Origin: Chlorokybus atmophyticus
Lineage: Eukaryota; Plantae; Mesostigma and Chlorokybus algae
Direction: 5' to 3'
Length of the DNA: 64,000 nt
NCBI GenBank assembly: GCA_009103225.1
Contig: RHPI01002090.1
Coordinates: 336,370 to 400,369, forward strand
Shown here: positions 5,507-9,097 of the stretch, in pieces
How the letters are laid out: each line of letters starts with the position of its first letter
How positions within the stretch are numbered: the first letter of the stretch is position 1
Translations under genes and position numbers: made by a program
The notes under the pieces: model-generated
The model's database searches: none
Seen by the model: the letters and a program-made list of their open reading frames with translations, nothing else
What the model was told of the DNA's origin: nothing

Positions 5507-6399
5507 CCTTTCCCAGCAGCCACATCCGGCAAGCCCGGCGTCACCTCACGACAATGCCAAGCATGCCTTCCACGCGCAACAGCTCGTGCAAGCGGAAACT
5601 GCAGCTGACAGCCCGACTAACCCACTCAGCCCTCCCAACCTAGATTCCTCAAGCCCGTTCCTCTATCGGCATTCCGCCTCCGCCACCACCACGACCGCCG
5701 CCGACGGCACCCACGACCGACGCTTCACTGCAAAGGGCGGGAGAGCAGTGCGCGACGCCACGTATGCATCTCGCGAACTGCTGTTACGTTAACTCAGTGC
5801 TACGAGGCTAACAAACGGGAAACTTCGTCACTACAGCTCGGGTTGACTGCGCCACTGACCGTGTTGTCCAGCTGCGATCCGCTGTCAACGCACCCTGCGC
5901 CGGTTAAGAATCTCAGTCAGTGTAAACCACTTGCTGTGCTTAGCGCAACAAGCGCAACTTGGACTTGCTGGTGGCGGCAGTGGCGGTGGCATTGGCGGCG
6001 GCGAACGTTGTATTGGGCCTGCGGCGTGCACATAACAGGTGTGTTGCTGTAATGTACATGCTATACGCGTGTTAAGCAGATGTGCAACGTAAGCTAGCGC
6101 TGTTGCACACAGCTACCGGTTGGTCGATCTACACTTCTGGTTTTGCATGGCTTTTGTCGAGAACATATGTGGGCGACCTATATTTCACTTCGTTGCGTAT
6201 TAACATCATCGTGTGTTGCAAACAAGTGCATGCCGTTCCTTTGCATGGGACCATGCTGACCTAATGCACTTGAACATGGCAATGCTGTGATGTGTTGAGC
6301 AAGACATTGCAGTTTCAGGTTGTACTTGTGTATTGACGCTATCTGTAAGCAAGACTGGTCGTCTGAAGCGATTTGTTGGTTGAAGTACAGACCTCAGCT

Positions 6400-8122
6400 A
6401 TGGCGCTGGTGACAGCCACCACTGTGTCTGCGCCGCTGCTGCTCCGGTCCAAGCAGACAGTGGCGTCATGCCGCAAGCAGCATAGCCGCCAAACCTTATG
6501 TGCACAGCAAGGCAGCGAGCATGACGGGAAAGTGTGCACAAAGCCAAGGTCTTCAGAGCTGAAGCTGTTGAGCACCGCACCCGTGGTTGGAGTTGCTGCA
6601 GGTGCCGGATTTGCACAATTGCTAGTTGTTTGAACAATTGCACAGTACGCCAGTGGAAACAACAATGTTCCTCACAACGAATCTGTCCTTACAGCTGGTG
6701 CTGTCACAAGCTTTCTTGCGCCATATGTGGAACTGGTGAAGGCACAGAACTACCCGGACTGGCTGATCCACTGGGGTCATCCAGGCAACATGGTAATTTG
6801 CTCGTGGAGCATGGCGTGCTCTGATTCAATGACATGGTATAAAATCATAAACATTATCGTTTCCTCAGGCTGTCGTCCTGCTTGCTATGGGTGGCTATGG
6901 CTCGTACTTAGGCTGGCAGATTCGCACCAGCGGAGATCAGGTGTGCCTTGTTACAATGTTACTTGTGGTTTTCAGCCGTCATGAGAGGTCTCTGCACTCA
7001 TGGATGTTGTTTACAGGCCTGGATTGCCAAAGCAAAGGACTCGCACCCTAAGATCATGGCAGGAATGTTCTTCTTCTTCGCTGCTGGTGCAGTTGGCGGG
7101 CTCACCTCGCTGCTCACCCAGGGCAAGCCTTTGCTGGAAAGGTACAGTCATGGGTGCCTATGATACACATTGCACCTTTGGTTGTAGCAGGTTGCCCATG
7201 CTTTAGCATGAGTTCTGACCAGACTGTGGTTTTCAGCCCGCATGCTTTAACGGGATTGGCGGGGCTGTCACTTCTCGCAGCACAGTCATTGTCTCCTCTG
7301 CTGTTTCAGGTACAAGACTGTACATGTCAGTTAGCATTCATGCATGGCAGGTGCATTGGCAGTTGTCGGGTTGCCGGGGATTCTGCTGCTCAGCAGTGTT
7401 CCACAGGAGCCCAAGCTGCAGTACGCTGCTGCGAGCGCCGTCTCTTCACCATCAAGCCCTTTGAGCTCTAGGCTAGCTTTCAGCAGTGGTTCCTCGCTGT
7501 ACCGCTCGCAATTTGCTCGCGGCAGTGTAGCTAGCAAGGCGGTGAGAGGGTCCTCAAGCGGTCGGTTTAGCAGCCAGCGCGGGCTGCGTGTTGTGGCTCG
7601 GGCAACACCGTCTAACCGTGATTCAATTCTGTCCGATGCCATCCAAGAGCCCATAGCATTTCTCGGCGGGCTGTTTGCGGGTCTGTTGCGCCTGGACCTC
7701 AAGGAGGACCCACTCAGGGAGTGGGTTGCCGAGACTGCTGAGAAAGCAGGAGTTGAGCAGCCTCAGTCAACTGTTGTTAATGATAACGATGAAGACGAGG
7801 GGCCCGTAGATATTGCCATTGAGTAGAGTGAATATTCTGCTCCACATTGCAGCAGCCTGCAGCTATTTCCTGGGCTTTTCAGTCAGTGAAACAGACGTAG
7901 TCTTGGAAACAGCAGGCCGCTTTGTACACTCCTTGTAGAGTTATGTGCAATTGCGTGTGTTCATGTACTAGTATTTGCGCTGATGCTTTTGTTGTTTTTA
8001 TGTGTCGTGAGCAGGAAAGGCCGGAGTTGCGAACTGCACACGCCTTCCTGGGCTCAGCGACAATGGCCCTTTTTGTCGTGCATGCCGTATTTGGCCTGCA
8101 GCTCGGCCTCAGTCTGCCTTGA
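6400..8122 (+). CDS. DUF4079 family plastid membrane protein (cytochrome b561-like); last exon 8015-8122
   Basis: Transit peptide MALVTATTVSAP..., then LIHWGHPGNM|AVVLLAMGGYGSYLGWQIR, AKAKDSHPKIMAGMFFFFAAGAVGG, PHALTGLAGLSLLAAQ and LFQ|ERPELRTAHAFLGSATMALFVVHAVFGLQLGLSLP*. These are the motifs of the plant/cyanobacterial DUF4079 family. Confidence 0.9.
7344..7826 (+). CDS. UPF0426-like chloroplast protein (At1g28150-like), lying inside the last intron of the DUF4079 gene
   Basis: 160-aa uninterrupted ORF with a Ser/Arg-rich transit-like segment, then SDAIQEPIAFLGGLFAGLLRLDLKEDPLREWVAETAEKAG...EGPVDIAIE*, the UPF0426 signature. Start codon uncertain. Confidence 0.85.
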   Translation: MAGALAVVGLPGILLLSSVPQEPKLQYAAASAVSSPSSPLSSRLAFSSGSSLYRSQFARGSVASKAVRGSSSGRFSSQRGLRVVARATPSNRDSILSDAIQEPIAFLGGLFAGLLRLDLKEDPLREWVAETAEKAGVEQPQSTVVNDNDEDEGPVDIAIE

Positions 8123-9097
8123 GGCGGACTTTTCGTATTGCTGGTGTCGCAGTTGACAGGGCACATTGCCCAAAGTCAGTTATTGTTGTTGTTGTTAATG
8201 TTTTGCAGGGTTATTGCGATCATACTGGTAGACACCTCAATTTGCACGCCATCAGTGACAACCTCTTAAATTTTGTGCCAATCGTGCACAGACATGCGCC
8301 GCAAACTCTGTCTCGATACAGTCAAGTCTGAATGTCATTTGCTTTTGTGCCCAACAATACACGACAACCGCACAAACAGCCCCACAGTACACAATGCACC
8401 CACTACTGCACTACTCTCACACCATCCCCGCCAACCAAATTTTGCTCCGTCATCAGCCTTGACGCTGTGCGTGTGCTGATCGCGGCTGCCATAGAGTGCA
8501 CACTTGCATGTCCATCGCAACAGATTAGTAATGAGAAACATATACAGATATAGTGTACAGGAAATTGTAGGCGCCATTGCGTGCATGCATTATTGCAACA
8601 CACGCGTTTGAACATGATGCACAATGCACATTGACAGCGCATGTCAACATACTCACCTACTTTACACATGTTCGACCACCGGGCTACCTACCCTACGCAC
8701 TCTGCTCCTACCCCACCCTGTTAGTCATGCCAGCATGCATGTGCAGCCCTTGTTACATCATCGCCACCACGCACTCTATCGTTCGTCCTGCCGAGAACTT
8801 CCTGTTGGCGTGCCGTCGCTGTCCTGCGGGGGGGCGGGCGGGGGGGGGGAGGACCCCAACAATTGTGTACAACAAGTTGTGGTTGGTCTGCCACACTGTA
8901 GCAAAAAGTATTGTCAAGTCCAAAACAGAAAAATAGCACACCTCGTGTACATTATATAAGCACAGAGTATGGATATTCGCCTAGCAACAATAACTGTTCA
9001 GTTCCCAGCCTCGCTGGTTAGTGCTGCTGGCTTCACGTCTGTACAAAACAATACCAAACAGTCATGTCCAGTTATTACCAGGTCGCATGCCAACAGC

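Follow-up and report, generated by a model that had tools for sequence, protein, structure and literature searches.

Alternative last exons that follow shared 5' exons are known from the calcitonin/CGRP gene (CALCA) and from the secreted and membrane forms of IgM. At the cholinergic locus, VAChT/unc-17 lies on the same strand as its host, nested in the first intron of ChAT/cha-1, and shares a 5' exon with it. Polycistronic nuclear mRNAs have been described in green algae (Gallaher et al. 2021, PMC7896298). Here we describe a locus of Chlorokybus atmophyticus that resembles each of these in part. It lies in a 64,000-nt stretch of DNA, referred to here as the window, and it brings together two protein families, DUF4079 and UPF0426. 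From our analyses, the locus is probably one nuclear transcription unit in which the donor at 7309 serves two last exons that exclude each other, the form fused to UPF0426 being the major one and the distal form apparently the minor one. The 329-aa fusion product (isoform A) is identical to P0008, the EukProt copy of the public model jgi/Chlat1/3876/Chrsp26S04016 from Chlorokybus atmophyticus, and therefore the fusion itself is not new. New is the finding that the canonical last exon of DUF4079, which is missing from the public protein models, is also expressed.

The RNA data consist of Logan contigs. Runs X1 and X2 belong to two studies (2013 and 2021) and are 100% identical to the window, and run X3 is labelled with the study and the organism of X2. 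Comparison of open reading frames, splice sites and RNA contigs identified positions 5930-8300 of the forward strand as one spliced gene. Its first exon (5930-6038) is non-coding and lacks any ATG; its left end is a minimum, as the X2 contig begins at 5930 and the X1 contig at 5997. The following 5'UTR intron (6039-6390; joint 6034->6387 with the cut at +4, GT..AG, in X1 and X2) measures 352 nt and far exceeds the coding introns (76-97 nt). Exon 1 (6391-6601) contains the ATG at 6400 and encodes a transit-peptide-like N-terminus and the beginning of the first hydrophobic helix. Exon 2 (6695-6792) and exon 4 (7017-7141) are bounded by joints found in X1, X2 and X3, those of exon 2 being GT..AG. 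The Pfam DUF4079 domain begins in exon 3 (6869-6940; profile positions 11-30), which is also defined by RNA joints, and exon 5 (7237-7309), defined by splice sites and RNA joints, ends in ...LLFQ in phase 0 at the donor common to both endings. The coding segments 6400-6601, 6695-6792, 6869-6940, 7017-7141 and 7237-7309 total 570 nt, or 190 codons with a phase 0 end. Every donor is GT and every acceptor AG, and the upstream coding introns measure 93, 76, 76 and 95 nt.

Two phase-0 acceptors lie beyond the donor at 7310, namely 7406|7407, which closes a 97-nt intron, and 8014|8015, which closes a 705-nt intron and is preceded by a T-rich tract. Use of the proximal acceptor gives a 329-aa reading frame with its stop at 7826, and use of the distal acceptor a 225-aa reading frame (isoform B) with its stop at 8122. 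As the other coding introns span 76-97 nt, a length of 97 nt is normal for this gene and 705 nt is the exception. These features agree with the original prediction, which had been made from the letters of the window. It had placed the end of a DUF4079 exon, LFQ, at donor 7310, and exon 5 does end in ...LLFQ at 7309 with GT at 7310. The predicted phase-0 acceptor CCACAG| at 7406, with its 97-nt intron, is used in RNA-derived contigs of two studies. The 705-nt interval contains, as claimed, an intact 160-codon ORF on the same strand (7344-7826), the relatives of which are UPF0426/PF26369 proteins. The conserved last exon proposed to start at 8015 lies in phase 0 behind a CAG acceptor, and its translation is ERPELRTAHAFLGS...LGLSLP and a stop.

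X1 and X2 each contained one contig covering the main mRNA, 1197 and 1211 nt long with a depth of 28 and 608, respectively. The contigs run through 5930 (X2) or 5997 (X1) to 6038, 6391-6601 and exons 2-5, and then through 7407 to 7982 (X1) or 7929 (X2). All six gaps are GT..AG, from which we conclude that the runs are cDNA-derived; the contigs of a further run, X4, include the introns, and X4 is thus DNA. The intron 7310-7406 is removed in this main mRNA (joint 7306->7404 with the cut at +3, GT..AG), so that both contigs contain the junction 7309|7407 and the shared donor is joined to the proximal terminal exon. The spliced mRNA is a single ORF of 329 codons, the frame of which continues into UPF0426, with no Met beyond residue 141. 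The in-frame fusion that had been predicted was hence assembled in two independent RNA sets and equals the public gene model. A polycistronic message, which had been offered as an alternative, does not agree with this mRNA, which has one continuous ORF with no start codon for its UPF0426 part. Short-read contigs can join isoforms, and the fusion transcript could in principle be a chimera made during assembly or the product of an unproductive splicing error. We regard this as highly improbable, as the same junction was found at full contig depth in two independent studies, the intron has GT..AG ends and the usual size, the join is in frame, and the genome annotators independently arrived at the same model. 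The stop codon of the fusion lies in the last exon, and the transcript therefore carries no signal for nonsense-mediated decay.

Terminal exon A consists of a linker rich in Ser, Arg and Ala (7407-7622), the UPF0426 (PF26369) domain with the stop codon (7623-7826) and a 3'UTR (7827-7982; contig ends at 7929 in X2 and 7982 in X1). The domain and its plant homologues have 28 invariant columns in common, and a UPF0426 family profile matched residues 213-329 of P0008 with an E-value of 2.4e-36; a precomputed match of PF26369.1 to P0008 is also on record. A local Pfam-A scan of the 160-codon ORF returned no family. Chlorokybus retains intact both the core EPxAFxGGxFAGLLRLDLxEDPLxxW..T...G and the acidic tail, which ends in IxIE. 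Among the relatives, AT1G28150 (UPF0426) appears in lists of plastoglobule proteins (PMC12587418, PMC13409515), and the Anabaena homologue asl4034 is enriched in cyanoglobules (PMC12923008). In joint alignments of the two families (A6, A9 and A10), MAFFT repeatedly superimposed the UPF0426 core (AFxGGxFAG) and DUF4079 helices, all of them rich in Gly, and caution is called for when the fusion protein is aligned automatically. Two candidate homologies within the locus were rejected. The similarity of the UPF0426 exon start (EPKLQY) to the canonical exon start (ERPELR) was considered as a sign of duplication, but in local DNA alignment a fraction of 0.64 of the shuffles scored at least as high as observed. 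For the UPF0426 core (AFLGG) and the last helix of DUF4079 (AFLGS), profile-profile comparison (hhalign) gave a probability of homology of 0.7%, and the likeness is compositional, both being Gly-rich helices.

The linker comprises 72 residues, including 20 Ser, 9 Arg and 10 Ala. Its two acidic residues are confined to the ends, Met is absent, and the segment aligns with the N-terminal transit peptide of stand-alone plant UPF0426 proteins. The original prediction had pointed out that this transit-like segment has no adjacent Met, which is borne out: the exon after the acceptor has none, and the sole in-frame ATG of the 160-codon ORF, at 7344, lies within the 97-nt intron. This arrangement bears on two further explanations. 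Firstly, the locus may be a same-strand nested gene, in which UPF0426 is made mainly from a promoter of its own in the long intron, as a 160-aa precursor starting at the ATG at 7344, and the fusion mRNA is a by-product. The ORF is indeed intact, starts with MA... and stays in frame across the acceptor, and its Ser/Arg-rich segment retains the composition of a working transit peptide and matches those of its plant homologues. However, positions 7310-7403 have no contig coverage in X1 or X2, although the adjoining exon is part of contigs with depths of 28 and 608. Contigs lose short alternative 5' ends, and an alternative 5' end of at most 97 nt would be clipped as a tip by the assembler, so the missing contigs over this interval prove little. 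No 160-aa protein with the sequence of the stand-alone ORF is on record, and we estimate that 21 open codons and an ATG would arise by chance with a probability of about 0.1-0.2, which is not improbable. Moreover, both studies yielded an assembled transcript across the junction, and this is also the form that the genome annotators selected. We therefore consider predominant expression from a nested promoter unlikely.

Secondly, the fusion may be a polyprotein precursor, which would be imported by way of the N-terminal transit peptide and cut in the linker near ...RVVARA|T, giving free UPF0426 and a truncated membrane protein of four helices. Such processing would be consistent with the transit-peptide composition kept by the linker, the end of which coincides with the start of the mature domain in plant UPF0426, and with the main mRNA, which offers no other route to translate UPF0426 because the exon has no Met. 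Nevertheless, a recently captured exon could retain a segment of this kind because there was too little time for decay, or as a flexible linker, and contigs cannot show protein processing. We give cleavage of the precursor a rather low probability.

Terminal exon B encodes the canonical last helix of DUF4079, with two invariant His residues and the stop codon (8015-8122), and has a 3'UTR at 8123-8300 (contig ends at 8265 in X2 and 8300 in X1). Its identity was established from Pfam, plant alignments and RNA contigs. Translated on its own, the exon matched positions 109-140 of the 141 in the Pfam DUF4079 profile (E 1.1e-5, 26.1 bits) and, weakly, cytochrome b561. P0008 covers positions 1-103 of the 141 in the same profile, PF13301, with 69.4 bits (gathering score 31.4 bits), and isoform A thus lacks positions 104-141. 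The 225-aa isoform B was compared by alignment to fetched homologues and by tblastn on fetched loci; the queries of the database searches were single exons or P0008. Identity between isoform B and 12 land-plant orthologues of the AT2G36885 type amounts to 67-73% for residues 85-190 and to 54-66% for the last exon, and land-plant DUF4079 proteins are 63-69% identical to P0008 over residues 60-190. All 12 aligned orthologues end in ...GLQLGLSY/F, and the distal exon stops at the same place. Six His residues are invariant in 16 aligned plant orthologues. Isoform B has all of them (H93, H96, H134, H168, H199 and H213), and isoform A keeps the first four, the last two lying in the distal exon.

In some sources, AT2G36885-type DUF4079 proteins are labelled 'di-heme cytochrome, transmembrane'. 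Sequence searches of the PDB returned nothing for either DUF4079 or UPF0426. AlphaFold applied to the 16 plant DUF4079 orthologues gave a mean pLDDT of 56, and with this low-confidence fold Foldseek found no PDB entry at an E-value of 0.001 or better. As there is no PDB relative by sequence, or by fold from the low-confidence model, the di-heme label is unconfirmed. AT2G36885 has been reported to be down-regulated under iron deficiency (PMC3254695).

The distal exon is represented in RNA by an island that is separate from the main contig. It spans 8012-8265 in X2 (depth 44, against 608 for the main contig) and 8033-8300 in X1 (depth 5, against 28). The gap between main and distal contigs is 7983-8011 at its narrowest, and RNA depth is 0 past about 8343. 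These limits and the flanking zero coverage match a terminal exon of 108 coding nt with a UTR of about 150-180 nt; the contig stops at 7929/7982 for exon A and 8265/8300 for exon B are ends of contigs, which cannot show poly(A) sites. Distal depth amounts to approximately 7-18% of that of the main contig in X1 and X2, but contig depth is one mean per contig and cannot rank the parts of a gene, so that this ratio is only suggestive of a minor distal isoform and a major assembled fusion mRNA.

The junction 7309|8015 was absent from all Logan contigs listed. The X2 island begins at 8012, three nt ahead of the exon, and the letters CAG at 8012-8014 are also the last three letters of exon 5; the bases preceding this shared CAG differ (T at 7306, G at 8011). 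A start at this position is the expected merge point of spliced and unspliced sequence in a de Bruijn graph, and thereby lends indirect support to a 7309|8015 junction, by way of the behaviour of the assembler. The switchable terminal exons of the original prediction thus receive indirect support: the distal exon is expressed as an island from its acceptor and is conserved, but no contig contains the junction that would join it to exon 5. We infer the splicing of the distal exon to 7309, the ratio of the two isoforms and the plastid targeting of both products through their shared N-terminus.

Run X3 provided a comparison between lineages. It contains a diverged copy of the gene at a depth of 238 and a trace contig identical to the window at a depth of 2.2. 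X1 and X2 contain no diverged copy, and as that copy is present at high depth in X3, this run looks like another Chlorokybus species with slight cross-sample carry-over, rather than evidence of a paralogue. Several cryptic Chlorokybus species with transcriptomes have been described (PMC8611356). Compared over 6475-7141, exons 1-4 of X3 diverge from the window by 5-17%. In the distal exon (8042-8122), only one of 81 nt differs, changing Val to Ile, and the 148 nt past the distal stop cannot be aligned to the window. Judged by this contrast between a nearly unchanged exon, more divergent exons 1-4 and an unalignable 3'UTR, the distal exon is under purifying selection. Its depth in X3 is 11.6, against 238 for the main contig, a low ratio as in X1 and X2. 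No UPF0426 exon was recovered from X3 at an identity of at least 90%.

These observations also bear on the view that the fusion is complete and the distal exon a dead remnant, with 8015-8122 no longer spliced, its RNA representing read-through or noise and canonical DUF4079 lost. The missing junction contig would fit such a loss, as would the absence of the canonical isoform from the protein collection and a public annotation with the fusion only. On the other hand, the exon keeps its open frame, a good polypyrimidine tract, the AG acceptor and both invariant His residues, and it retains the above-mentioned identity to plant orthologues. It is also the best-conserved part of the gene between the two Chlorokybus lineages, next to a post-stop sequence that is unalignable, and the RNA island of X2 begins at the acceptor and is set apart from the upstream contigs. 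A dead distal exon is thus quite unlikely in our assessment.

We searched for the same pairing in other organisms. A UPF0426 homologue profile, run against 1.84 billion representatives, had 270 relatives, and among the 150 matches listed none but P0008 carried DUF4079. With the DUF4079 half of P0008 as the query, 437 relatives of 181-576 aa were found, and none but P0008 among the best 120 of these carried PF26369. P0008 is the only DUF4079 relative from Chlorokybus atmophyticus in the protein collection, and the canonical 225-aa isoform is therefore absent from it. Five cyanobacterial loci (L002-L006), three prasinophyte contigs (L007-L009) and L010 were inspected by tblastn and gene tables, and in none of them did a DUF4079 lie within 6-8 kb of UPF0426. 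Synteny of the two families elsewhere, which the original prediction had suggested as a check, is thus not seen in the prasinophyte and cyanobacterial loci. As far as these sequences go, the fusion and the gene adjacency are confined to Chlorokybus among the organisms sampled.

Other long UPF0426 matches carry unrelated domains, namely a mitochondrial carrier or a dienelactone hydrolase, and have the appearance of merged models. In the Closterium proteins P0074 and P0275 (541-550 aa; loci L011 and L012), a UPF0426 domain at residues 44-129 is combined with a dienelactone hydrolase, which occurs alone in P0274 and P0276 (394 aa). These UPF0426-hydrolase models are probably two adjacent genes merged in annotation; they could possibly represent a second independent UPF0426 fusion. 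P0076 (299 aa) has a mitochondrial-carrier repeat followed by the complete UPF0426 core and tail, and is likely a merged model or a chimera. In marine prasinophyte contigs, a 128-aa gene with no Pfam match precedes UPF0426 by 146 bp on the same strand (7469-7855 and 8001-8492 in L007), and the two may form a two-gene transcript.

According to the preferred explanation, alternative last exons, the proximal choice removes the 97-nt intron and joins exon 5 in frame to one large exon, formerly an independent UPF0426 gene with a relic transit peptide, and this transcript would end near 7930-7980. The 329-aa product comprises a predicted transit peptide, four of the five DUF4079 hydrophobic helices, the 72-residue linker and the UPF0426 domain; missing from it are the last DUF4079 helix and, of the six invariant His residues, two. 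The distal choice would remove the 705-nt intron, skip the UPF0426 exon and use the canonical exon at 8015, yielding a 225-aa orthologue of AT2G36885-type DUF4079. With an intron of the usual size and a putative 3' end of its own, the proximal acceptor would capture most transcripts. Most likely, the arrangement originated when a stand-alone UPF0426 gene located in the last intron came to use the host donor and its own start codon fell out of use. The in-frame ATG at 7344 may be this former start, or may be due to chance. In a further and improbable elaboration, the main product would act as a plastid polyprotein, in which UPF0426 enters the plastid attached to the truncated DUF4079 membrane module, the linker is the processing site that releases UPF0426, and the choice of exon sets the balance between full DUF4079 and a plastoglobule-type protein; plastoglobule proteins are known to be stress-responsive. 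If true, this would point, in the manner of a 'Rosetta stone', to cooperation between two uncharacterised families that descend from cyanobacteria.

Under the preferred explanation, the locus would be of evolutionary importance as a gene birth caught midway, with a complete nested gene and its transit-peptide relic serving as the dominant terminal exon and the original exon still under selection. The fusion also provides a testable functional link between two conserved plastid/cyanobacterial proteins of unknown function, although synteny elsewhere lends this link no support. As a mechanism, alternative last exons are well known. There is in addition a practical consequence. The public annotation lists the chimera only, and Chlorokybus therefore appears to have no canonical DUF4079 protein, which affects orthology tables for an early-branching streptophyte that serves in reconstructions of the ancestral gene set of plants.

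Compared with the two protein families elsewhere, the locus has both shared and divergent features. The distal isoform ends exactly as canonical land-plant DUF4079 does, whereas the major isoform is without the C-terminal part of the profile. Stand-alone UPF0426 proteins share the conserved core and the acidic tail with the Chlorokybus form; the other members seen are small (approximately 60-190 aa) and have their own Met, and only the Chlorokybus form is attached to DUF4079. Like the polycistronic mRNAs of green algae, the main transcript delivers two conserved families on one mature mRNA, but those mRNAs contain separate ORFs with their own starts and stops, and here there is a single ORF, in which the second protein has no start codon. 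In the cholinergic locus, similarly, a gene nested on the same strand is expressed under the promoter of its host, with alternative splicing from an upstream exon that both share. There, however, the shared exon is non-coding and the proteins are separate, whereas in Chlorokybus 190 codons are shared and the fusion is in frame. The resemblance to genes of the calcitonin/CGRP type lies in a single promoter, in upstream coding exons used by both forms, and in one donor for two terminal exons that exclude each other. Each of these has an acceptor, a stop codon and, in Chlorokybus, a putative 3' end of its own, and the proximal one is situated within the intron of the distal form; for Chlorokybus, the distal junction in this comparison is an inferred one. 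The Chlorokybus gene differs from that type in that its proximal exon holds a whole conserved family, UPF0426, together with a relic transit peptide, and takes the place of the host protein's last helix, along with a third of its invariant His residues.
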